Made by a program: the position numbers and the translations under genes
Assembly (NCBI GenBank): GCA_965644295.1
Contig: CBFFRP010000244.1
Coordinates: 35,381-99,380 of the forward strand
DNA from: Paraphysomonas bandaiensis
Lineage: Eukaryota > Protista > Chrysophyceae
Length of the DNA: 64,000 nt
Direction: 5' to 3'
Notes under the pieces: model-generated
Seen by the model: the letters and a program-made list of their open reading frames with translations, nothing else
Told to the model about the DNA's origin: nothing
The model's database searches: none
Part shown: positions 12,415 through 62,059 of the stretch, one piece after another
Layout: each line of letters begins with the position of its first letter
How positions within the stretch are numbered: position 1 is the first letter of the stretch

Positions 12415-14742
12415 ATGGACGACATAAAAGATATCATTGGTACTATAGTGAGGGGGTGTGCGCAGGGCGGAGTCGTAGTCTCTGAGGTGCTTGCTGCCTT
12501 TGTTGCTCGTACGGTAATACACACACACGTATATATATACATACACACTGCTAACGTGCCTTTAGATCGTGGAATCAAGCACAGACTCCTTTGCTCTTGA
12601 TCGTGCGCTCACTTCTGAGGCGAAAGATGAGGTTATCATTCAGAGCATCGAGAAGCTGTTGGAGAAAGACAGTCCGCAGCTTGAGACTATGAAGATGCAG
12701 GTAAATACACTCATTGCGGTCGTTGTCGATACTATTTTTATATTAACTCTTTACAGGTTGACTTTGATTGTTCATTTTTAGAAGAAGACGCTGAGTTCCA
12801 AAAAACTATACGACTTCACAAAAAAGTTGTGTCCACAGCAAGGGCGAACATTGCCGAATTAGAAATGCAAGACGCGAATGACTTTGAAGCACTGACGACA
12901 TTGTACCGCAAAATATTTCGATTTCTTTTAGAATTTGTGCCGACAGAAAAATCTATACAGGACCGGGCCATCGAGAGGGAGGTGGCTGCAGCGTTAGAGA
13001 GCGTGTTTCCTAGGATTGGTCTAAAGGCGTTTGTGCAACTCTCTTACGAAGAAAAGAACGCGCAACTGATGGAACTTGCCCGCATTGTATTTGGCATTCG
13101 TCTTTTTAATCGCCATCAAGATAGAGGGGGGGCTGGTATCGATAATATTGATTCGAAATGTCCGGAATTAGCTGGAAGTATTGATCGCGAAATTCGAAAA
13201 GAAGCCGAATCTGTATCAAATTTGTGCAGTAAGTATCAGGAAATCATTGTGAAAACGCATTTGCAACGACGTCGTCTTGAAATGAAAGCGAGAGAGAAGA
13301 TTAACGGTAGAATAAACGATTGCAAAGACGAAGATATTAAGGGTGATGATAGCGTGGATGATGTGGAGATGGAAGACGAAGAAGTGGGTGACTGGCTGTT
13401 GGAGCGATGGTCACATGAGCTGGCTAATAGACGTCAGTATCTCGCATTTCTCAGAAGTTTGCAGGAAGAAGTGGGTGCTAGTGTGGCAAAGATCACTGAT
13501 TTGATAGATACAATTCAGGACGAATTGATCAACCTGAGTGGCTTGGTGGGGGGCCGGGCGTCGGTCGCGAAGGAGCAAGTTTACCCACGATTTGATGCTC
13601 TTGCCAGTACGTGGTTGACTCTTTGGGAAGAATATAACCTTTTGAGGGCCAGGAATAACACCTACATGAAATTAAAACTCTATCGATCATCCTATGTCTG
13701 TGCATTGACGGAACGCATGTATTCCACATTGGGAAGAATCATGGACTTGAAGGGAGATGTTGTGTCACTCGCTGCTGCAAAGAGTGGTGCATATGATGAT
13801 GAAAAAGCCACTATGACACCATTGGACAAGAAGCATAGCATTGAAGATAAATCTGGCAATAAAGGTGGTATGTCAAAGGTAGATGACGAAGACAACGACG
13901 GGGATGGTGGACCTGACGACATGACTGCTGAAGCAAAGACTGACAGTGCAAACAATGAATCTTCTATTCCGAGGGTTTACAATGATCGAGATATTGTACT
14001 GGAGACCATGTCAGCCAAAGGTGCTGCTCTACTTTCTGTACACGATACTCCCGATTTTATGCAGCTACCTCTTGAGTTACAAGGGTTCTGTCCATGGACA
14101 ATGGTGCACGCCAACGGCCTATTGGTTCCAGGAAAACCTGCTCTTGGAGTAATTCGATATGAAAATTTATACTACGTTTGCGAACATAAAGTCGCCATAA
14201 AAGCCTTTATGGATGATCCTGCTTATCATATAAAGAAAATCAAAGAAACTGCTCAAAAGAGTCCTGAATATATTCATTTGCTACGACTTCAAAACTACTT
14301 TCCTTCAGCCTCCATTGCTCGCCTCGTCGAAAGACCGGACTTTGATGCGCAAAGTGGAAGCAAACCAACGACCAAAGATGCTAGCACAGGAACTCCTACC
14401 CATTTCATTGAGAAGAGAATTGATCCTCATTATCATTGGAATGAGTGGGTATTGCGCCAGCGGGTGTTGAAAGTTGTAAATTTGAAAAATTGTCGCACTG
14501 TTGGACAACAAACAGATCAATCACATTTCAAGCGCGACAGCGAAACTCAAGTGTATTTGCCACGGGCGAAAGAAACTCAGACTAAACGTGACCGAGGAAC
14601 TAACCCAGCTACTAAGTCGGTGTATATAACTGGACTGCGAGGAAAGCTATCAGAAGATGCCAAGGCTGTTTCCAGATACATTTCTCCTGATGTTAGCAAC
14701 AAGGAAAGAGTTCGTGCAGTTACCCTCACTTTGGATCCATAA
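12415..14742 (+). CDS. CFAP206: Cilia- and flagella-associated protein 206
   Basis: Introns 12514-12565 and 12701-12756 restore the frame. Motifs REVAAALESVFP, GIRLFN, LELQGFCPWT..GLLVPGKP, TPTHF..HWNEWVLR. Confidence 0.93.
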
Positions 14743-20300: not shown

Positions 20301-22662
20301 CCCGCACAATTAGACACGCCGATAGGCACCATCGTATGGGCTCCAGCAGAAGCTTTATAATCACTGCACTCACTATCTCTCCGACTTAAGGTTTTCGAAA
20401 ACACCTGACAATAGCATACACTTAAATTCATATCGAAACTTGCAAAAATCATACCTGGTACACTCTACTTCCAATACCTTTATCATGTAAATGCATTCGC
20501 TCTGCAAGAGTGGTTTTCTCACTTTCTAATGTCCCATTTGCAATCATGCTCAATAAATTATCAGAACTGTCCGAAGATTCAAGAGGTGATCCCACTGCAG
20601 GAGTTGCACTTGCGACATTGCACTTCTCACGAAAATCGATTTTTCCCCATACAACGACCTTATCCGGTATGCTATTAGTATTACAAGAATTTACGTTCAA
20701 TTTAGGCCCCGTGTCGCTACACTTTTCACTCTTAGATTCATCATGAAAATTATCATGTACGTTAGAATCACAATACTTCCCAGTTATGCTGTACAATAAT
20801 GCCCGAGGAATAGATGAAAAGAGAGGAAGCGTGACAGAGTTTGACCTTGCAAAACCGCTTAATATATCTGTGTAAGGAAATGGGGCAAAACTCCCCCATA
20901 AATCTTCCTGGAGTAGCATGACTTCTGTATTGAGTGAAGTCGCATGATTCGTAGCTAAGGACGGCTGTGCTGCAACTGATCCAAAGCTGTTATTCCGCGC
21001 ATGTGACTTCACATTAAGACTATCCCTCCTAGACTGCTGTCCACTTTCGTTCACATGAGATACGTGAGAAGGTAAATTATCAAGTGACCGCCGCTTTCTC
21101 CTCTTTCCTTGCTCAGGCATATATCGAAACTGTGCAGCATAGGTTGTTGTTGTCAGCGGTTTTAGTGCGTCGTCGGCATCCAGCTGCTCTAGCCCCGTCC
21201 ATCTAAAGTCGTTCTTTGGAGGACCATTCCATCCATCAAAAACTTGTGATTCCGAATACTTTGTTTTCGCAGTCATCGGAGTTTGAGCGACCCCGGACAT
21301 TTTCATATGCAGTGCCATAGAAGACCTAATAAAAGATTATTTCACGACAGAAAAAAAATATTGCACTTGCCTTGTGTCTTTTCCTATTAGAATATACTGC
21401 AAATTAATCCAGTGAGGCACTTCATAAAATCCGCCTACGCCATGATCTTTCGGGAGAACATGAAAAAGAGGAACGACGTGAAGTGGTGGCTGGGAGAGTG
21501 AGACTAAATCCATTCCTATTCCGGTGTCCATCATGCGCTGCTTGGTAATCTGTGCAAGCTTCGGGTCAACTTTAAAATAGCCCGAGCCAGCTGTGACCAT
21601 GACGATACTGTTTCCTGTCCGCACGAGATCACGGTCCATGTAATGTTTATCTAGAACGTTGAAAGTCACATTGATGGCTTCTAGCATATTCCCTTCCGCG
21701 GCCCCACTGGGAACAGTAATGGTGCCAGTAGACGATGGCTTGGAGGGGGAGTCAGGCATGTCTCCATTCACATTTGGGAATGGCACTTTCCAATTCAGAG
21801 CCTTTGCAAAATCCCAGAATTCCGCCTTAAGATTTCTGATAACAATTGATTTGTCATACACTGTCGAGTTTTCTAACACAACTTTAAAGTAATCTTGGTA
21901 TGAAACCCGTTCGGAGGCATCTGAGACGGTCTCCTCGGTGGAAATAACTTTATCACTATCAGCTTTTCCCTTCAGACGAAAGGTTCTTGCAAAAAACACT
22001 ATTGACAAAGAGTGAGTAACATCCTTGCTTTTCCACCTATCTAGAATAGGATCCACGAACATGTGTAAAAAGCGTTCGAAATACAAATTTCCATTCCTCT
22101 CCATTTCCCACATTTCCGATGATATCTGAATTAGCCAATAAATTCTTGCAGAGCGCGAACGAAATACAATGTTTGTCTTCGGTGTTATGATGCCAGACTT
22201 CACGTACTTTCTTTTCGTTTCAAGTTCTTGTATCTGAGCTTGCACATTTTCAATGCTCACCGACTGTCCACTGTACATTATTCTCCCGACAATGGCGTGT
22301 TTGAATCGCAATATATGACCGCGCTGAACAAATTGCCTTTTGCATGCTAATACAGCAAACTCTACTTCAGCATCTTCAGAGGCCACAGCACTGACCATAA
22401 CACGAGACGACAGTGAGTTCAAGCTGAGTAATTCCGCCACAAGTTTGGACACCATAACCTCATATCTATTCCCTCTTGTGGACGTCACAGAGGTTACTTT
22501 CAACACCAGCTGATCATCCTTACTCTCTAGGTTCGATATCTGTACGTAGTCGCCCTCTGATATGGAGGGAGCGGTCTCGCTGCTTATCTCAGGGTGCTGG
22601 AGAGATATAGCGTCATCATTTGACTTGTTGTCTATGCGCACTGTGTACGTCCTCTGCGTCAT
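17324..22662 (-). CDS. DEPDC5: GATOR1 subunit DEPDC5/Iml1
   Basis: IML1 motifs FRSRSARIYWLIQISSEMWE and GNMLEAINVTFNVLDKHYMDRDLVRTG; RRRWAYAF; C-terminal FHFAIHWIVC. Introns 21370-21326 (GC-AG) and 20454-20405. The first in-frame ATG is at 22662. Confidence 0.92.
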
Positions 22663-24629
22663 GACTCTCACTCGATGTCCCCCTACATCAGACACAGCAT
22701 ACTCTCCAGCTCTGCCTCTCTTGAGTATGCGTGTGTGTATATGTATCTGGGCATGAAGTCAACTTCGTCTGCTCCTCTATACATACATACACTCCGCTCT
22801 ACAGAACCCTCTGCTATGACTACATGAAATACCCCCTATACACTTTGTATACCATGTGCGTGATTGACTGCACATAAGATATGATGAGTATACATACGGC
22901 ACGTATTCTTCAGTATAGTAGTTGACGATGTATGGAGTTGGTGGGTATCTTGCATATCTATCCATGATATGACAGTGTCCCTCACTCATAACCGTGCAGT
23001 CAATACATATGCATCGCAACTAGACGTCACTACTTGGTGCAATGACGACAAGTAGCATACATACTTTCTAATATTTTGAGTAGAAGGAGAAGGACTATGT
23101 TTCATTCAAGCAAATGTCTTATTTATTCTCAGGCCATATTCATATCTTGTAACTTAGAGCACATTGAGCTATACATATAACATTATATATATGATGATTG
23201 ATGTGAAGAATTCAAGGAAGTTAAATGTTTCATAATAGCGAAACAAGTCTATCCATTTGCATGCATTCCATACCTAACGGCATAGATATCTATCGATCAC
23301 ACTCACTGTCAGTTTGCCATACCTTCATATTGCATGTTTGCTTGAGATGTATTGAGTACAAGAAGAGAATACCGCAACGTCAGATGGGGGAAGCAGGCAC
23401 TGCATGTAGTGATAACTAGGACAGGGTTGTCGAATATAACTTAGGGTTTTGTAGGAACGCACAATTTGGTCACATCATTTAACGAAACCCCGATAAGAAA
23501 TGAAAGAAGAGGCGGGAAATCGATTCGCTGCTGAAACACGCCCTAGGATTATGATAGTAGTTTGTTATTGGGACACACCAAAATTAATATAAAATAATAT
23601 GATATGATAGTGAGTAGAGTAATAAATGTATATATAATAGAAGTATAAGTGCATGTAAGGTAGAGATGAAGTTTCTGTGGAAGTGTATCATAAGTAATGT
23701 TAAGCAAGTATAGCGACTTGCATGAAAACTCTCAATGGCACTGCAATAATAGCAATGCTCTGTTTCACACAATATTGGCCATTCAGTATCCGATTCAGAC
23801 AGATAAATACATAAATACGATCGCCATAATTTTATTTCTGCAATAACTACAACCAAACCGTACAAGTAGTTAAAGCTGGTCCTTGCAACTCATAAAAAAT
23901 AATATATATACCAGGAATTAGTGATATTGAACAACATATTATGATAGTGTTGTTTGTGTAAATACGATTACAATTTACAATCATATACAATAGACACTTT
24001 GGTCTAAACCATATATATCTGCTGGCAACGGAACTGCCGGTCAGAATCGTGTTGCTACATTTGATGAAGTCTATGTAGAAACAAAAAAATGCATACTTTA
24101 TATCTATATAGTTTTTCCTGCTCTTGATTAATACTTGTAGCACTAACAATTCTTCCACACGATATAGCAGCATACAGAAGTAAAATAGTGGTACGGAATA
24201 TATATTATATATCTACGGTAATGACTTTGCGGAAATCTGTAGAATGATCAAACGATTCGTCGTCATAAATTTATGCCTGTACTAGAGAAGGGAAATGCAT
24301 ACATGAGTAACCATAACAAACTAAACACACAGCTGTATGAACTCGTGATGTGTATATGTTACACATATTTATATATTATTCACAAAGCATGAATCACTGC
24401 AGCACAAGCAAATATTAACATTGCATCCCTCATTACGTCGCCACAAAAGGAACATATGCTACTCAATATTTATGGATCGAAAAGGTGAAACATAATACTG
24501 ATACTCATGTAGTATTTGATATTTACATATAGAGTTATTACGAACCCGTGAATTTATTTTCATGGAAGACTCGCCACTGGTAGTACCATAGATTGCTGAG
24601 GACTTTGTATTACCCACTTCTGATGGCTC

Positions 24630-30112: not shown

Positions 30113-32237
30113 TTAAGCAGATTGAGGTTTCTGATCTGCTGCAAGAAGCAATTTTTCCATCTTATCAACTTGCAACTGGACAGGATCGTGAGGCAACACT
30201 TCACCCTCCTCTCCTCTAGGCTCGTGAACCTGCAACACTATTAGAGACTGAAGAAAAATACGAAGTAGGTTACCTTTCTAAGGTTTGGAGACAGTTTTAG
30301 AGAGTTCACTCCACCTCTGTCATCACCGACGATAAGAATGGGATCACTCTGGTTGAAACACACATGTGTCAGCTTCGCTCTCTTGACAACCTTCTGTTCA
30401 CATAACGGTTCGTGTTTATTCTCCGCCAGATCAAATACATGCACCTGTAATATAAATCATAATAAGACTAGGGTTTAGGTGTAACCACACAACTAACCTT
30501 TCCGTCCGAAGTAACAGCGGCAAAAACCGTTGATGAATACGGGGCCCAAGCTACATCTCCTACAGCGTTTCCTAGGTCAAACGACAGGATAGGAGTTGGG
30601 AAATTGTGATCCCATATCTTAACAGTCCAATCTGCGGAGCACGAAATGAATACACGAGGATGGAAAGGGTTCCATTTCAGCGCATACACCGCCATGTGAT
30701 GTCCCTGATATGTCTCCAGGTACTGCCCGCTGTATGCCTTTGAGCACTTGTGAATATTTCCTTCCTCCGTGCCTACGATGAATAGGTGCTCATTGTGCCG
30801 GTTAAAATCGAAGCAGCACCCTCCTGCAAGACCTGAGAGGTTAACCTCATCAGGGTCATCCCTGGCAGTAGCCACCAGTTTCAGCTGCATGACAGGTTCC
30901 ATTTTCAACTCGTTCTTGCTCATGATCCAGGAAGCAACTTGACCATCAGAGGATATCGAGAAAAAGTTTAGCTCTTTTACCAAGTCCTCATCTTGCCAGT
31001 GTACTTGCCACACAGGGTCAGTGTGCTTCCCCGTGCGAATCGAAGACGAGTAGATTGGCCGGTTCACGCGGTTGCGCACATCAAATACCATTACAGTCCC
31101 ATCATAGCATCCCACAGCCAGTAGAGATTGATGCCTTGGGTGAAAGTCTAGACTCATAACTCCAGACTCTGTTGAAAATATATATTCTGGGTGAGAAGTA
31201 TTCTTTAGGGAAAAGCAGCACACCATTCCGGATCCCTGTCGCATGAAGTCATAACTCCCATACGCCACTGCGAACAAGTCCGGATAAGCAGGGTTCCACC
31301 GGATAGCGGTAACCTGCTTGCGCTTCGTGCGCTCAGTGCTGAATCTCCACAGTGGGAGCAAACTTCCCTCTCCATTGCGGTACCAGTCGCTAGCGTCTTC
31401 CCAATACTTAAAGTCCTGGAATATCTCATCCTCAGCGTTCTGATTTACCATGCGCTCAAGAATCTTGAGTGCATTGCTCATCTTTTGACTATGAACCATA
31501 TCATCCTCTTTATTTGTCTTGCTAGATGCATCTTCCATACTTTGCGCGGAAGTGCTACTTTTACGTTTTTCAACATTCTTTTGTGACTCCTCCTCTTGAA
31601 TCTGCTTTTTGTACTCAGCCATGTAAGCGTCGTAGATTTCCCACTGTGTCACAGTAGCAAAGAATTGTACAACAGGAGGAGGTTCAGTCGCAACTCCGCG
31701 AGAACGAAGAGAATTATTAAACGTTTGTGCGGCGCGTTCACTGTAATTGAACTGATTCTTTCCTGTTTTTGGAGCTTCTGCATCCACATCATCCTCACCA
31801 GCATCCAGTGCTTCCTGCGCCGCCTCCTTGCGAAGCCTTTCGATTTCCATAGCTTTCGCCTCTTCTAACTGCTGCTGATGCTTGGCTTCATCACTGTCTT
31901 TATGAAGAGAGCATCCGTCCATTTGAAAGTGGAATGCAAGATTGTCCATGGGTCCTTCGGGATCCTGCTTGTAAGCCTTCTCTTTGTAGTTATATTTGGT
32001 CGTGTTATTTGGCACATTCGGATCATTTGCAGTTAAAATACGAGTAAACTCTTCAGCAAGTTGTTCTTCAGTCAACACGACCTGATTTTCAGGTCTCACA
32101 ACACGCTTAATGGGCTCACGATAGAAATCTTCCTCCTCGTGAACTAATGGAGCGGTTGGTAACATGCTCGAGGCATTGTTCTCATCTGATCCATCTTTTT
32201 TCTTTTTAGTGGCCCTCTTCACAGGTTTTGGGGCCAT
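30113..32237 (-). CDS. DNAI1: Axonemal outer-arm dynein intermediate chain (IC78/IC1 type), WD40
   Basis: [58 protein letters not shown]. Introns 30497-30445 and 30273-30230. Stop at 30113. Confidence 0.92.
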
Positions 32238-54161: not shown

Positions 54162-55355
54162 TATGAACAACTCAGGTCTTGCAACCTAAGATCACTGAAA
54201 AGATATGAAATGGTTGTTTATCGAAACAACAAAACAGAAAGCTATAATAATAACTCTTTAAGAAACCAACAGCCAGAAACACAAGCTCCCCTGTATCCTG
54301 CAATCTAAAGCTCCCAATAGACAGATCAGTCAACCAACTATGTTAATTTCATAGAGAATTATTATTAAAAACTAAGTTACAAGCGAAACAAAAGACAGAC
54401 CCCTCTAGTCTAAAGACTCCTCCTCATACACAGGACATTGAATGCAACCACAACCGTACAATGTGCTCATACATGTACTACACTACATACGATTCTTATC
54501 CTACATCGTTTATAGTCAAAAACTCCCTGAAATACGCCTAAATAGGTCCTTTCCAAAAAACTCCGATTTTTGAGTCCAAAAACCCAAAAATCCCCAATTT
54601 TTTGAGAATTGCAGAAAATCGCCGATTTTCGAGCCACAAACACCCAAAAATGACAATATTCGAATCCACAAAAATTGCAAGCACATTTCATGACAACGTG
54701 AAATACACAATCGCCAACTCATGCATAATACCGACAAAATGCAATCGGGTTCAAAAGCTTACAATCGAACGGTTAAATATCATTTCCTTGCAAGAGTGTG
54801 TACTTTAGACTGGACCATACAAATACACTCATATTCAGATCACTAACATGCCCATGACACCTCTACATCTACGTCCAATGGCACCTTACGAATTCCTCCC
54901 CATTCCGGAGAAAATCAACGGTGTATGGCAATGGAGGAATATTCGTATATCAGAATCCAGAACAATGATCAAGCACATAGAGCTGTTCAAAACCATCAGA
55001 AAGCTTCTCATAATGATGGGTGGACTACGAATATCGCACATGCGGTACCAATCAATGCTTCCTGACCCAAAACGCTATGACACCGACTACCGTATGGATA
55101 TAGGCGTAAACCGACGGGTAGCAATCGCGTAGATCAAAGAAAACGTGTGTTCGAGGGTAAATCCTAGTTGTCTGTCGTCTTGCCCTCGTAATAATAATCT
55201 GTATCTCTTGTTGTCACCAATCTTATACAAAACAAGCTACATATACCCTACATATTATGTTATCATATCGTTATTGCATTAATATAGTTATCAATATTAT
55301 TATGATGATGTCATTAAACGTGTTAAAGGGTGTTATAAAAGCCCACGGCTTTACA
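54162..55355 (-). repeat. Gypsy 3' LTR
   Basis: Minus strand TGTAAAGCC...GTTCATA, preceded by the PPT GGGGGGGGAGAAAGGG. Confidence 0.95.
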
Positions 55356-55385
55356 TTACCCTTTCTCCCCCCCCGGATGCCGTAG

Positions 55386-58300
55386 CTACTCCTGAATAAT
55401 TTTGGGATAAGCCGCAGCGAGCGACGCATCAACCAAAATCATGCGAGCAGGGTCAAAATCCTTCTGGGACCCCCAACAATAGACCAAATAGTTGTCGAAC
55501 GCATAGTTGGCACCGTTAAGGTTAAATTGAGCGCTAATCTTACGTCTCGAATTCTTATGATACCAATGAGTATACGTAAATTCCATGACGTACTCAGCCG
55601 TGTCGAAATCAGGTAAACCAAGACTCTCATACCAAAGGTCACCGTAAAATCTGAGATCAACATAAACAGTATCTCCAACCGAAACTGTTGTGATATTCTC
55701 TTTCCTCATTGAAGAGATAAAACGCTTCGCCGTAAACGAGTCATACGCAAGATGCCGCAGGTAAGGCCTAGACTCACAGAAATCATAATACGCTTCACAC
55801 TGAATATCCGGTGTCCATGGAATGTCCAGGATATCGCCGTCTGCATACTTCACCTTGAAAACCATCGTAGATTTAGTACGTGAATCACCCGTATATGAAA
55901 GAATCTCCTCCACCTTAAATTGTTCATGGTCTCGCATCGCCGCCTCAATAGCCGATTCCTTATCTCCGAAAAATGGCTCAAGATCAGAGACAGAGTATTC
56001 CCGAATCCCCCCGGTAAGAAGATTTCGAATTTGAACATCATTCTTGTATTGCCGTACCACTTCGAAAGGACCCTTCATCCTCGAGGATAATTTCGGATGT
56101 GGTTTAGCACCAGCGTCGAACATAACAAAATCGCCTGGACAATACTGGTTTTGTTTGGCAGGATCCAAACCCGCTTCCGCTCGTTTCTCAACTAGAGACT
56201 TCTGGTAATCTGCTGATATCTGGCGAACTAGAGCTAAGTAATCGTTCAGCCTTTTCAACAGCTGATGAGACGGATCATTGTCTCTCCCCTGGGCGGCCAG
56301 AAGATTCTTATAAATGGAATCCTGGGACCCAAACGTCAGTTCGAATGCAGAATACCCCGTCTCACTACTCTCGTGGGTATTCAGAATGAACATGATAGTG
56401 GCAAGTAACAGTTCGTCCTCCAAAACAGCATCCGCCTCAATTCGCTTGTCAAAACAAATAGCACGGATGTGACGAACCACTTCCTTAATAATACGCTCAC
56501 ACCCATTGACATGCCTGTTGGCGATACTAAAAACATGACGGAGTCCTGACAACTTAACCAGCTCTGCGAAAAGCTCTGATTTGAGATCCGGACCCATATC
56601 TGATATAATCATATCCGTGAGCCCGTATGTACACCAGCACTTCCATACTGCTGTAGCCAAATTGATAGCCGTCATTCCTTTCACCGCATATAGGTACACC
56701 AATTTCGTAAACAAATTAACCATGACCACAATATGCGTGTAACCAGATTTAGAAACAGGTGTAATAGCAACCGCGTCAATTCCCAAAGCACTCCTGGAAT
56801 GAGGCGGTTTTAAATGTCTAGTGATAGGAATCAATCGCTGCTTCAGCTCTCGCCTATTCTTCTGACAGTTGATACATTCGTCCACGAAGTCTGCAACCAC
56901 CTTGAAAGGCACGCCGTGTCCCGGAAATTGCTTACACAGACGCTTCCACGTCTCTTTCGCACCCCAGTGTCCTACTTGCGCGTTGTGAACCTCCTTGATA
57001 GCCTGATGATAACCTATCCTCTGCTCCTCCGTAGGTGGCGCGATCTCCTGCACTTCGTCCTCAAAATCGTCTTTTTCAAAGATGTTATGCAGCGTCACGA
57101 AGTTCACTTCATCTGAGTCGAAATCGTCACTTTCGTCCACAAATCCGGACAAATACAGCAATCTTGACAAGCAATCCGCAACCACATTGTTCTTCCCTGG
57201 GATATGACGAATCAAAAAGTCAAAATCCTGCAAATAAATTCTCCATCGAATTATCTTCGCAACTTCTGATGCCTCCATCCACACAAGGTTGTTGTGGTCC
57301 GTCTCGATTGTAAATTTCTTTCCTCTCAGATAAACGAAAATTTCTTGACTGAATAGAATATACCAAAACCCTCCTTCTCAATAGTACACCACTTCAAGGC
57401 TTGCTCTGACAATTTCTTGGAACAGATAGCAATAGTTTGCTGTTGAATCGGACTAGACCCAGTTCCCTCAACAGTCTGGAAAAGAATGCCTGCCACTCCA
57501 TAGTCACTGGCATCTGTCCTAAGTGTCCACTCAAGATCATAATTCGGATAAAACAAAGCACAAGACTGTTGCAAACCACTCTTATAGTTTTCAAACTCCT
57601 GCCTATAATCGTGCTGCCATGTCGTTTCTTCCCAATTAAAACTACTCTTAGTCATATCCGTAAGATGTTTGACCAAATCTGAGTAATTCTGAACAAATGG
57701 AGCAAAGAATACTCCCAGACCCAACAAAGATCTAATCTTCTTACATCTATTTCCATTCTCTGGAAAAGGAATCTTCAATAAAGCCTCTTTCCTATCGTCC
57801 GTGAGCTCGAAACTATTGTGCCTTACCAAATAGCCAAAAAACTTGATCTCCCTAAATCCTAACCAGGTCTTTGCAAATTTCAACACAACTCCATGTTCAA
57901 TGCATCTATCCAGGAAAATCTCCAGCTTCTTATACGCATCATCAAAATCATGTGCCAATAACAGAACATTATCAAATATACACAGCGCCCATTCCAGATC
58001 TCCAAACAATTTGACTACCGCTTCTTGCAACACACTAATCCCTGGAGACACTCCCTCCGGAAGGAATAAAGGCTGAAATTGGCCCCACGGTGTTTGAACT
58101 GACAATTTTTCAGATGTGTTCTCATGCAACCTGATCTGATGGAACGCATTCGTGAGGTCAATGTCCATAAATATCTTATAGCCAATAATACGATCCAACT
58201 CATGTCTTACATTAGGAACTGTATAGTGTGGACTTGGAATGTACTTGTTGATTTGCACGTAATCCCCACAAATCCTAATAAAAGGTTTCGTGGCTTTTGG

Positions 58301-59323
58301 CGCGATCACCAAACAAGAAGCCCATGGCGACCTACTAGGAACATAGATGTAACCACACAGTCTCCTAAACTCCTTCTCCGCATCCTCATATAATCTAGGA
58401 TTTACGGGTCTTGCTTTCGGCTTGATCCTAGGAGGCAAATTCTCAGCGAACTTGATGTTCAACGGATCCACTCCTTTTATACCTTCCCACCGCTCTGGAA
58501 CAAATACCTCTACTCCCTTAGTCCTCAATAACTCCAGCACCGGTCGCGCTGCTGAGAACTCTGGAGACACGTGCTCACCAAACATATCCTCGAACTCGCT
58601 CAAAGCTTCCTCTCTAGTCTTTCCAAGAAAACTTGAGGCAAATCCGAACTGCGAAGGGTCCGGAACATCCAATTCTTCAGGTGCTACCTCCCTACTACTG
58701 TCACACCACGGCTGCAATAATTCTTCAACCGCATTCAACAACAAATCATCCTCGGTAATATCGTCCTCACGCCTTTTAATAAAACTTACTTCTGATTCAA
58801 TTCGTTCAATAGTCCTTCCTTTAAGCATAAATAGAAAATAATCCCATAAATCCTTAACGATAGCCGGAAGTCCAATAATAATATCGTTGCTACCCATATC
58901 AGCAACAATGAAATCCCCGTCATATAACACGAACTCTCCCTTGGAGTCTTCTCTCTCAAACCTCAATTTTAATTTCACTACAAAACTACACTTCATTCTC
59001 GACGTTTTATCGGCAAATCCTATAACTGTTTCTTTTTTTATGACTTTGTTTTCACACACATGATTTCTAAACGTCTCAAACAAATCCTTGGAAATGAAGT
59101 TAGATGTTAGGGCTCCAGTGTCGAACAATATTCCACGCACAGATATTATATAGTTATCATCACATACAATGCTTCCCCCAGAATGAGCCAATGTCAAGTC
59201 TTTTCGTTCTCGCGTATTACAGACATTCATCAAATTTCTGAGGAAAACTCGACTAACAGTCTCAGGATCATTCAAACCGTACAATATTTCTTCGTGATCC
59301 TGCGAACCATTAGCCTCGCACAT
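55386..59323 (-). CDS. Gypsy pol (PR-RT-RNase H-IN-chromodomain), with one frameshift near 57333
   Basis: PR ILFDTGA; RT RICGDY, DIDLTNAFHQI, CIFDNVL, FFGY; RH TDASD, EKEG, ETDH, VADCLSR; IN HHCC, GIDA, ISDMG, NGCE. Adding one T gives FSFYLRGKKFTIETDHNNLVW. Confidence 0.92.
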
Positions 59324-59326
59324 TTG

Positions 59327-60797
59327 TCAAGTCACTCCACCAGGCCTCGGCAAAATCTTTCGCGGCCCTTTGGAATCATCTGCCATCATCTGAGACAGCT
59401 TCTTCATCATCCATTTCCGGGTTTCCGTTGCAACTGCTCCATTATGACCCTGAACATGCTTACATTCCTTCCCTTTGTAGCAGTTCCCATACAACGCATA
59501 CGCAACGCAACCACGGGTTGGATTAACAGTCTTCTCCAGGTTCATCACCTGTTCTATAGCTTCCTTATCAGACTCTGGTTCGCCGAGCAACATCTCCTCA
59601 ACCTCATTCTCGAAATCATCATCTGACATCCCGTCATCCTTGACCACAACTATCGGGTCAACCTCCTTGTCATCTAAATCACTGTAGAAATCATCCTCAA
59701 CTCGGTCCGCAAACTGCACGTTGTTTAAAGATTTCGGTTTCTCCTTTGCAACGTATCCATTGTCCCGATTCCTCGAACTCCTTTGAATTTGCTTCTTACT
59801 GAAATCGGACCCTTCATAAGGCACCAATCTGATGTTCTTGGACGCCTCATAATGCTCACTCGCCTTGGAAACGTATGTATCCAGAAACTCTTCAACATTA
59901 CCATAATTAGTATCCGTCACCCTTGGAATCTCAGCCAGAACTCGTTTGTTGTAAGACTCGTCGATCAACTCCAAAAATACTTGAGCCGATCCAAACTCTT
60001 TTCCTCCAACCGGCGGACACTTAGTACTATTGGCCTCCATCATGATAGTAAACGTACGCATAAAAATACTCTTTCGCTTCAAAATCTCTTGAAAAAAACA
60101 GCTCATGTGTATTCGGCCGCACTGATTTCCAATCCAGTGGCTTAAAATATCTCAGCGCGTATCGCAAAGTCTCAATGAACTCAACTTTGGACAACACCTT
60201 GGTCTCCTTAGCCATCATCTCACAGAATTTCTGAGCACTCAACTTAACAAACATTTTATCCGTCAAGCTATTGTTGAACATAAGCAGGTTCCGAACACGC
60301 CTGCTAACTATCTGGGCTGGCTCAAGCTTAATCCCATTGATCTGTTCATATTCAAACCATTGGATGATAAACTTTGTAAAATCACTAAGCTCCATCGAAT
60401 CCAGAAAAATATGCTTATGGGATGGCTTTTCAACATTGATGATGACATGCTTTGGAACCTCCATTCCCTCTGAAGACTCAGCCTCCCTCATGAATACAGA
60501 TGTCCTTCGCTCTTTCTTCTTGCCTTTGTCGTCGGCAGCCCTGCCACTCTCTCTGGTATGTCCCTGCTGCTCTTCACGCTGGTCACGGATGGCCTCATCT
60601 ACTTCCTTCTGAGCTTCCTCCAGCTCATTAACTAAAACTTCTTCATTAATAGACATTCTGGACTCCAGATTATCTACCCTACTGGCAGTTGCTACACACA
60701 ACTTAGTGACGTTCTCCAAATTGAGAGCAATTCCCCGTAACATTTCCTTAACTTCATCTAACTCAGATGAACCAACAGGACCCTCCGAATCAGACAT
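59327..60797 (-). CDS. Gypsy gag (coiled coil, capsid-like region, CCCH finger), with one frameshift at the T7 run 60098-60092
   Basis: ORFs 60027-60797 and 59327-60106 join if one T is removed (HELFF|QEILKRK). Confidence 0.75.
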
Positions 60798-60865
60798 TTC
60801 GATATATATCTGTAATCTACAATAATGATATCTTCACTTACGTGTTTTACCGTTAGTAAATTTAC

Positions 60866-62059
60866 TATGAACAACTCAGGTCTTGCAACCTAAGATCACT
60901 GAAAAGATATGAAATGGTTGTTTATCGAAACAACAAAACAGAAAGCTATAATAATAACTCTTTAAGAAACCAACAGCCAGAAACACAAGCTCCCCTGTAT
61001 CCTGCAATCTAAAGCTCCCAATAGACAGATCAGTCAACCAACTATGTTAATTTCATAGAGAATTATTATTAAAAACTAAGTTACAAGCGAAACAAAAGAC
61101 AGACCCCTCTAGTCTAAAGACTCCTCCTCATACACAGGACATTGAATGCAACCACAACCGTACAATGTGCTCATACATGTACTACACTACATACGATTCT
61201 TATCCTACATCGTTTATAGTCAAAAACTCCCTGAAATACGCCTAAATAGGTCCTTTCCAAAAAACTCCGATTTTTGAGTCCAAAAACCCAAAAATCCCCA
61301 ATTTTTTGAGAATTGCAGAAAATCGCCGATTTTCGAGCCACAAACACCCAAAAATGACAATATTCGAATCCACAAAAATTGCAAGCACATTTCATGACAA
61401 CGTGAAATACACAATCGCCAACTCATGCATAATACCGACAAAATGCAATCGGGTTCAAAAGCTTACAATCGAACGGTTAAATATCATTTCCTTGCAAGAG
61501 TGTGTACTTTAGACTGGACCATACAAATACACTCATATTCAGATCACTAACATGCCCATGACACCTCTACATCTACGTCCAATGGCACCTTACGAATTCC
61601 TCCCCATTCCGGAGAAAATCAACGGTGTATGGCAATGGAGGAATATTCGTATATCAGAATCCAGAACAATGATCAAGCACATAGAGCTGTTCAAAACCAT
61701 CAGAAAGCTTCTCATAATGATGGGTGGACTACGAATATCGCACATGCGGTACCAATCAATGCTTCCTGACCCAAAACGCTATGACACCGACTACCGTATG
61801 GATATAGGCGTAAACCGACGGGTAGCAATCGCGTAGATCAAAGAAAACGTGTGTTCGAGGGTAAATCCTAGTTGTCTGTCGTCTTGCCCTCGTAATAATA
61901 ATCTGTATCTCTTGTTGTCACCAATCTTATACAAAACAAGCTACATATACCCTACATATTATGTTATCATATCGTTATTGCATTAATATAGTTATCAATA
62001 TTATTATGATGATGTCATTAAACGTGTTAAAGGGTGTTATAAAAGCCCACGGCTTTACA
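60866..62059 (-). repeat. Gypsy 5' LTR
   Basis: Same sequence as the 3' LTR. The four LTR-internal ORFs in the track are identical in both copies. Confidence 0.95.

Follow-up and report, generated by a model that had tools for sequence, protein, structure and literature searches.

In a 64,000-nt stretch of the genome of the chrysophyte Paraphysomonas bandaiensis (assembly GCA_965644295.1, contig CBFFRP010000244.1, positions 35,381 to 99,380 of the forward strand; this whole stretch is hereafter called the window, position 1 being its first letter) a complete retrotransposon with long terminal repeats (LTRs) lies on the minus strand. By its LTRs, domain order and reverse transcriptase (RT) similarity it is classified as an element of the Ty3/gypsy type. 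Its RT has Ile-Phe-Asp-Asn (I-F-D-N) at the place of the Y-x-D-D box, which carries two of the three catalytic aspartates. We consider it very probable that the element is a recent insertion from a large and old clade of Ty3/gypsy-type elements, found in chrysophyte-like stramenopiles and aquatic metagenomes, where the active site of the RT has been remodelled as a trait of the lineage. The element and the three RT motifs discussed below are located as follows.

54162-62059, minus strand: whole LTR retrotransposon, 7,898 bp, with GGGG on both sides (4-bp target-site duplication); five other copies have the same architecture and 4-bp duplications.
57968-57979, minus strand: RT motif C, I-F-D-N replacing Y-x-D-D (direct reading, HMMER alignments, AlphaFold2 model, surveys of copies and clade).
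58136-58165, minus strand: RT motif A, DIDLTNAFHQ (HMMER alignments).
58052-58060, minus strand: RT motif B, P-E-G, with Glu instead of the Phe of Ty3 and cauliflower mosaic virus (CaMV; both PFG) or the Gln of Moloney murine leukaemia virus (MMLV; PQG).

Position of the I-F-D-N Box in the Reverse Transcriptase

The plus strand of the window at 57968-57979 is ATTATCAAATAT, and its reverse complement, ATA TTT GAT AAT, is translated as I-F-D-N. The four residues are in frame inside EWALCIFDNVLLLA, which belongs to a 665-aa minus-strand open reading frame (ORF; 59323-57329) with Pfam matches to RVT_1, RT_RNaseH_2 and RT_RNaseH. For the alignment with known RTs, HMMER was run against all chains of the Protein Data Bank (PDB) with the single window sequence and then with a profile of 97 members of the clade described below. 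Ty3 RT (4OL8) is the top match, at E 1.7e-25 for the window sequence alone and E 2.4e-56 for the profile; CaMV and then gammaretroviral RTs come next. In the alignment with Ty3, c-i-f-d-n is placed on V-Y-L-D-D with no gap, and m-d-i-d-l of motif A on T-T-L-D-L; with the clade profile, both Ty3 and CaMV (YVDD) show the same pairing of I-F-D-N. In the single-sequence alignment with CaMV and in the profile alignments with MMLV (VDD) and xenotropic murine leukaemia virus-related virus (XMRV), F is placed on Y with a one-residue gap. Still, in the alignments with Ty3, CaMV and MMLV/XMRV alike, the D corresponds to the first Asp of the box and the N to the second one.

The AlphaFold2 model of the RT with the start of RNase H (pLDDT 94.5, pTM 0.85) contains a strand at residues 146-149 (ALCI), a turn at F150-D151 and a strand at residues 152-157 (NVLLLA), which together are predicted to form the motif C beta hairpin with F-D at its turn, like that of canonical RTs. 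Foldseek searches with the predicted fold retrieve the RTs of CaMV, MMLV and Ty3 at TMq 0.76-0.83. As the HMMER alignments and the modelled hairpin agree, the I-F-D-N box, which a preliminary description of the window had placed at the YxDD position, is real and correctly located in the RT. The same description had pointed to an upstream catalytic Asp in DIDLTNAF and to several substitutions behind the change from Tyr to Ile; the former is present (DIDLTNAFHQ, 58165-58136), and the latter requires at least two base changes. The second D of motif A (58159-58157) is aligned with the catalytic Asp of Ty3, CaMV and MMLV, while its first D (58165-58163) is an extra acidic residue specific to the clade.

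One might suppose that the register is wrong and the true catalytic pair lies elsewhere, or that A-to-I editing of AAT or AAC restores Asp in the transcript. The gapped placement of F on Y (CaMV with the single sequence, MMLV with the profile) does leave some freedom at the first two positions of the box, but the D/N pair stays with the first and second Asp throughout, the model has F-D at the hairpin turn, and no conserved DD dipeptide is seen nearby in the clade. As for editing, the motif is spelled in RNA-library contigs as it is in the genome, and one such contig shows 0 differences. Both suppositions are therefore considered extremely improbable.

The Motif in Copies and Families of the Genome

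A DNA search of the organism's own genome (62.6 Mb in 669 contigs) yields at least 24 copies of the element at 99% identity or above, plus diverged copies. Twenty-seven out of 27 readable copies have FGDLEWALCIFDNVLLLA, that is, IFDN, and one heavily decayed copy has IFDT. A protein search of the same genome yields approximately 150 RT matches falling into tiers of 100, 90, 73, 72, 70, 65, 63, 62, 54, 52, and 51% identity; the representatives of every tier are [IL]FDN, and constitute about ten diverged families with amino acid identity of 51-90%. The identity then falls from about 45-51% (FDN) straight to 28% (YLDD), the latter value corresponding to a gypsy family with canonical motifs, FIILDLVSGYYQ (ILDL), LPMGL and LYLDDLIIY. 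Among the sequences of this genome, Asn is encoded by AAT in seven and by AAC in six, and both GAT and GAC are used for the preceding Asp.

Between the window family and its sister with 90% amino acid identity, the proportion of nonsynonymous differences (pN) is 0.06 and that of synonymous differences (pS) is 0.93, that is, saturated; raw values are reported, as synonymous saturation makes the Jukes-Cantor correction fail and leaves the dN/dS ratio undefined. The pS value fits saturation with many two-fold sites, and the GC content of third codon positions (GC3) is similar in the two subfamilies. The comparison shows that the RT, including the two codons of the D-N pair, has long been under strong purifying selection.

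The Wider Clade and Its Signature

A word-based protein search seeded with the window RT core gave, among the matches listed, at least 120 relatives with identity of 42-80%, all of them x-aromatic-D-N, and a second search, seeded with a member among the most distant (P0118), gave 104 further proteins, mostly full-length pols, all with the full signature. The alignment-based counts given below refer to 119 + 105 RT cores, the window's own core being present in both sets, and extend down to approximately 40% identity.

Motif C Asn: 224/224 RT cores.
Asp preceding it in motif C: 223/224 RT cores.
Aromatic residue before the motif C Asp: 224/224 RT cores.
Aliphatic residue at the position of the motif C Tyr: 224/224 RT cores.
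Catalytic Asp of motif A: 224/224 RT cores.
Acidic residue at motif A -2: 224/224 RT cores.
Motif B P-E-G: 224/224 RT cores.
Ty3, for comparison: T at motif A -2, F in motif B.
CaMV, for comparison: S at motif A -2, F in motif B.
MMLV, for comparison: V at motif A -2, Q in motif B.
YLDD family of the same genome, for comparison: I at motif A -2, M in motif B.

The clade consensus is thus [ILVM]-[FYWH]-D-N in motif C, D/E-x-D in motif A and P-E-G in motif B. Neither of the two clade searches yielded intermediates (FDD, DN without PEG, or PEG with DD), and the boundary of the clade on the YxDD side lies beyond their reach. The named members are Ochromonas (Chlorochromonas) danica and Synura sphagnicola, the others coming mostly from aquatic metagenomes. 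One relative is present in several copies on contigs of up to 532 kb in a eukaryotic assembly, and nearly all of the DNA of the window element itself can be found in marine metagenomes from about ten studies. A search of a protein atlas returned generic gypsy RT clusters alone.

These surveys bear on the simplest explanation of the box, a private inactivating G-to-A mutation in a dead copy mobilised in trans, which the preliminary description had named as the alternative to its own reading, with FDD expected in the other copies. The window copy is indeed defective, its RNase H and gag frames being broken, but DN is observed in the other copies, in the sister families and in the relatives, with Asn encoded by both AAT and AAC. 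The surveys of copies, sister families and clade refute this explanation, and we give it virtually no credence. The homologue alignment proposed there as a check for a fixed [IV]FDN also has a clear outcome: DN is fixed, with IFDN in 27/27 copies, [IL]FDN in the sister families and Asn in 224/224 cores. As the change is fixed in all readable copies and in more than 220 relatives, IFDN appears to mark an active site that has been remodelled and works, rather than a defect.

An observation of a different kind concerns three metagenomic polyproteins of the clade (P0136, P0137, and P0154; 1,694-1,756 aa), which contain PF03372 (Exo_endo_phos) in addition to RT, RNase H and integrase. This domain has the AP-endonuclease-like fold of LINE elements and is unusual in an LTR element.

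Recent Retrotransposition

The two LTRs of the window element are 100% identical over 1,194 bp. Moreover, in each of the six full copies considered (the window copy and five fetched ones) the 4-bp target duplication is perfect and the insertion site is a different one, and their LTR pairs are 99.1-100% identical. Open pol frames of 1,313-1,330 aa are retained in 15 of the 24 near-identical copies, and at least 64 open pol frames of at least 1,250 aa are found across the FDN families of the genome. Two metatranscriptome libraries contain contigs that together span most of the element; over the motif region these show 0 and 1 differences. Because the target duplications are perfect and the LTR pairs near-identical, elements with the FDN RT have gone through full retrotransposition cycles, finishing reverse transcription and integration very recently and repeatedly.

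Hence the data show a motif that is fixed, under long-term purifying selection, and carried by elements that retrotransposed very recently; they support the existence of an RT that naturally does without the second Asp of YxDD and still sustains retrotransposition. The preliminary description had spoken of a two-aspartate RT that completes retrotransposition. The loss of the second Asp and the fresh insertions with perfect duplications agree with this, but the two invariant extra acidic residues near the site do not, and the label is incomplete and may misdescribe the chemistry.

Fresh insertions could also arise if the RT were dead throughout the clade and the elements were copied by the canonical YxDD RT of another element in the cell. 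The same genome does contain a gypsy family of the canonical YLDD type whose open frames are long, and the Ty1 mutant D211N, discussed below, cannot transpose, both of which would fit such copying in trans. Against it stand the strong purifying selection on the RT domain (pN 0.06, saturated synonymous sites) and the other polymerase motifs, all of which are retained in over 220 lineages whose identity goes down to about 40%. A dead enzyme would not keep the metal-binding Asps of motifs A and C invariant, and no YxDD RT was found other than the 28%-identical one, which comes with its own gag and LTRs. We regard this explanation as very improbable.

The canonical LYLDD family (C146, C412, C435, and C241; L051-L054) has open frames of up to 1,614 aa together with the gag and LTRs of its own. 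As it coexists with the FDN families, the host does not impose the DN change, and the family is a useful internal control.

Structure and State of the Window Copy

The other features of the element are listed in the order of the LTRs and the polypurine tract, gag, and pol.

60866-62059, minus strand: 5' LTR, 1,194 bp, 100% identical to the 3' LTR across 1,194 bp.
54162-55355, minus strand: 3' LTR, 1,194 bp, 100% identical to the 5' LTR.
55359-55374, minus strand: polypurine tract GGGGGGGGAGAAAGGG, directly upstream of the 3' LTR (direct reading).
59330-60797, minus strand: gag region in two overlapping frames (60797-60030 and 60106-59330), split by a private one-base length difference near 60092.
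59444-59509, minus strand: CCCH-type Cys/His cluster CVAYALYGNCYKGKECKH at the gag C-terminus, not the usual CCHC zinc knuckle.
59327-59329, minus strand: in-frame stop between gag and pol (frame arithmetic).
57329-59323, minus strand: pol part 1, protease (LFDTGA), RT and N-terminal RNase H (Pfam, alignments, fold model).
57326-57331, minus strand: frame break in RNase H, past the second and before the third acidic residue, caused by a private one-base length difference.
55389-57284, minus strand: pol part 2, C-terminal RNase H (ETDHNN...ADCLSR), integrase (H2C2 zinc domain and rve core) and C-terminal extension.

The evidence for the protease is the LFDTGA motif upstream of the RT, and the Pfam scan finds no protease family in the window copy. 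In the ORF 57284-55389 Pfam identifies Integrase_H2C2, as well as rve at 27.8 bits, below the curated cut-off of 32.6 bits. The PF00385 chromodomain is absent from the last 204 aa of the window copy (Pfam, E up to 5) and is present in some relatives from the clade (P0093, P0094, P0195, P0203, P0207, and P0229). The sequence past the 5' LTR does not begin with TGG, and no TGG-type tRNA primer-binding site is evident on inspection, no tRNA comparison having been made. At the inner edge of the 5' LTR there is a perfect 14-bp palindrome, TAGTAAATTTACTA (60854-60867).

The gag and pol genes share one frame, with a single stop between them. The stop is conserved, as in 14 other copies the 1,313-aa open pol frame begins right past it, and this arrangement suggests that readthrough rather than frameshifting may be used.

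The preliminary description held all acidic residues of RNase H to be intact. Their codons are indeed all present, but a break near 57326-57331 puts the third of them in another frame than the first two. At this site 29 out of 29 other aligned copies have a length that is different by one base, and their frame stays open; at site 60092, the contigs of X14-X16 and approximately half of the X1 depth differ by one base in length. One DNA run of the organism resembles noisy long reads, with many fractional one-base gaps, so the frame breaks of the window copy may be assembly errors; they may also have arisen later by mutation, or indicate that sibling copies mobilised the element. As it reads, with RNase H and gag both broken, the window copy cannot have supplied the enzyme.

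Two observations on other copies concern the LTRs. In several copies (L068-L075) the RT region is at least 99% identical to that of the window copy, while the LTRs are only partly alike (70-92% over 440-550 nt, with the remainder unalignable). Such near-identical coding regions on different LTRs suggest recombination or template switching between families. On contig C408 (106197-119172) two copies of the family are located approximately 4.9 kb apart and a truncated LTR is shared between them, possibly a tandem or nested arrangement resulting from LTR recombination.

Outside the element, at 1-54000, the window contains host genes with long intron-poor ORFs: FAP206 (12829-14739), the N-terminal domain of IML1/DEPDC5 (21340-22695) and a WD40 protein (30471-32237). 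The presence of FAP206 implies a flagellate stage with radial-spoke axonemes. This FAP206 is 100% identical to an MMETSP transcript, and its closest relatives with a name come from Pedospumella, Mallomonas, Dinobryon and Ochromonas, which marks the host as a marine stramenopile of the chrysophyte lineage.

Comparison With Known Systems

The window element resembles Ty3/gypsy elements (Metaviridae; Ty3 PDB 4OL8, 7Q5B) in having LTRs, a 4-bp target duplication and a polypurine tract, and in having gag followed by pol with the order protease, RT, RNase H, integrase (H2C2 and rve); the nearest solved RT is that of Ty3, with the same fold. It differs from Ty3 in motif A (D-I-D-L-T-N-A-F-H-Q compared to T-L-D-L-H-S-G-Y-H-Q), in motif C (IFDN compared to YLDD) and in motif B (PEG compared to PFG), the RT identity being 22-23%, while its gag ends in a CCCH-like cluster instead of the CCHC knuckle. 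The canonical Y-x-D-D box of Ty3/gypsy is thus lacking, and of the three catalytic Asps expected in an active RT the second one of motif C is Asn in 224/224 cores. From chromoviruses the window copy differs in that no chromodomain is detected in it. The GyDi elements of diatoms, a stramenopile-specific Ty3/gypsy cluster also found in marine metagenomes, are similar in host range and in the order protease, RT, RNase H, integrase (PR-RT-RH-IN); this comparison is by description, as the paper is silent on the catalytic motif (PMC2806351).

An Asn at the second Asp of the box is natural in nematode BEL/Pao elements (Belpaoviridae: Cer, Tas, Atlas virus), which have YVDN and are apparently active, Atlas virus having identical LTRs and an intact polyprotein (bioRxiv 10.1101/2021.11.23.469668). 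The preprint credits YVDN in BEL/Pao to Bowen and McDonald (1999) and Felder et al. (1994). The likeness to the window element, LTRs and the naturally occurring Asn, is a shared trait and not shared ancestry: BEL/Pao is another superfamily, with animal hosts, and its members keep the Tyr, unlike the window clade with its aliphatic and aromatic residues. Moreover, Pfam finds no BEL/Pao families (Peptidase_A17 and related) in the window pol. The YVDN of BEL/Pao and the FDN of gypsy most likely arose independently.

The same replacement has been introduced into Ty1 RT. The mutant D211N (YVDN) polymerises in vitro, with the polymerisation rate constant (kpol) 223-fold lower and a preference for Mn2+, while its transposition is lost completely and is restored to 5-10% by suppressor mutations in RNase H (PMC2148107). 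The preliminary description was thus right about polymerisation in vitro and too mild in stating that the mutant transposes very poorly. The laboratory mutant cannot transpose, whereas the natural clade seems to do so efficiently, which would imply a built-in compensation.

The L proteins of Mononegavirales have GDN in motif C. The VP1 polymerase of birnaviruses, in which the order of motifs is permuted, has ADN for GDD and is fully active (PMC3121795). Like the window RT, these are right-hand polymerases with a natural Asn for the second motif C Asp at the same hairpin apex; they differ in being RNA polymerases of RNA viruses, not RTs, and have no detectable sequence relationship to it here. 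As Ty1 D211N polymerises in vitro and natural DN polymerases exist, the second Asp of motif C would, by analogy, be the most tolerant position among the catalytic Asps.

A Possible Mechanism

To our knowledge, no polymerase of this fold can do without two of its ligands, the Asp of motif A and the first Asp of motif C; in the clade they are retained in 224/224 and 223/224 cores, respectively. Polymerisation would then proceed with these two as the essential metal ligands. The amide oxygen of the Asn could still contact the metal or a water molecule, though more weakly, a role also proposed for the Asn of DN motifs in other polymerases of the right-hand type. The Glu of PEG and the extra Asp of motif A, co-fixed with it, may re-tune the handling of dNTP (deoxynucleoside triphosphate), pyrophosphate or metal, and the aromatic residue at the x position of motif C could be one more of the co-fixed changes re-tuning the site. 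Together, they might spare the clade the large rate loss caused by Asn when it is introduced into Ty1 RT.

A stronger proposal, concerning the mechanism alone and not the identity of the element, is that the third carboxylate has been relocated: the Glu of PEG or the Asp at motif A -2 would bind metal, pyrophosphate or dNTP, giving three carboxylates in a new geometry. Both acidic residues are invariant (224/224) and absent from Ty3, CaMV, MMLV and the YLDD family of the same genome; no intermediate combination is seen among the clade members, and many Q151M ternary complexes are present among the structural matches of Foldseek. The MMLV Gln aligned with the clade Glu is, we take it, the counterpart of Q151 of human immunodeficiency virus 1 (HIV-1), a residue of the dNTP pocket. 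In HIV-1 RT, Q151 is on the sugar side of the dNTP and D186 on the side of the primer and metal A, and by this analogy a direct swap is geometrically doubtful. Moreover, the residue at motif A -2 faces the palm core, and the co-conservation could be explained by shared ancestry alone. On balance we consider the relocation rather unlikely, and the functional replacement of the lost motif C carboxylate by the motif B Glu and/or the extra motif A Asp is put forward tentatively, as a possibility of the same order. If this replacement is true, the geometry of metal, dNTP or pyrophosphate would be one unseen in characterised RTs, possibly with altered metal preference, fidelity or pyrophosphorolysis.

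Whichever mechanism applies, the reading of the window element as a recent insertion from a clade with a remodelled active site has several points against it. We infer RT activity from genomic footprints and conservation, and the metatranscriptome contigs may include DNA. The frame-broken window copy must have been inserted by the protein of a sibling, unless the breaks are later events or assembly errors. Finally, if Ty1 is a guide, the 223-fold loss of kpol and the abolished transposition after the D-to-N change mean that compensation would be needed, and for the clade it is only proposed.

Significance

Three conserved aspartates are stated for all RTs in reviews and enzymology papers (e.g., PMC2148107). 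Laboratory mutants with Asn for the second Asp of motif C are severely impaired or inactive in vivo. A literature search revealed no account of the FDN motif, PEG or the D-x-D signature in Ty3/gypsy, most subscription journals and Repbase being outside its coverage. As nematode BEL/Pao already provides active LTR elements whose RT naturally has Asn for Asp, the Ty3/gypsy case with its co-varying signature is a new variant and not a new principle. The gypsy FDN clade is probably a second, much larger DN case, independent of BEL/Pao, and the precedent suggests that the DN solution arose at least twice in LTR retroelements.

For annotation, the clade is a warning: if a missing YxDD is read as a sign of a dead RT, misclassification would affect hundreds of elements that are apparently active, both in chrysophytes and in metagenomes from the sea and from fresh water. 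For the biology of the family, it is a large and successful clade that has had Asn long enough to saturate synonymous sites many times over, and thus a natural, many-fold replicated experiment on the role of the third carboxylate and on the compensation of its loss, where the co-varying signature makes the question of compensation testable with recombinant enzyme.

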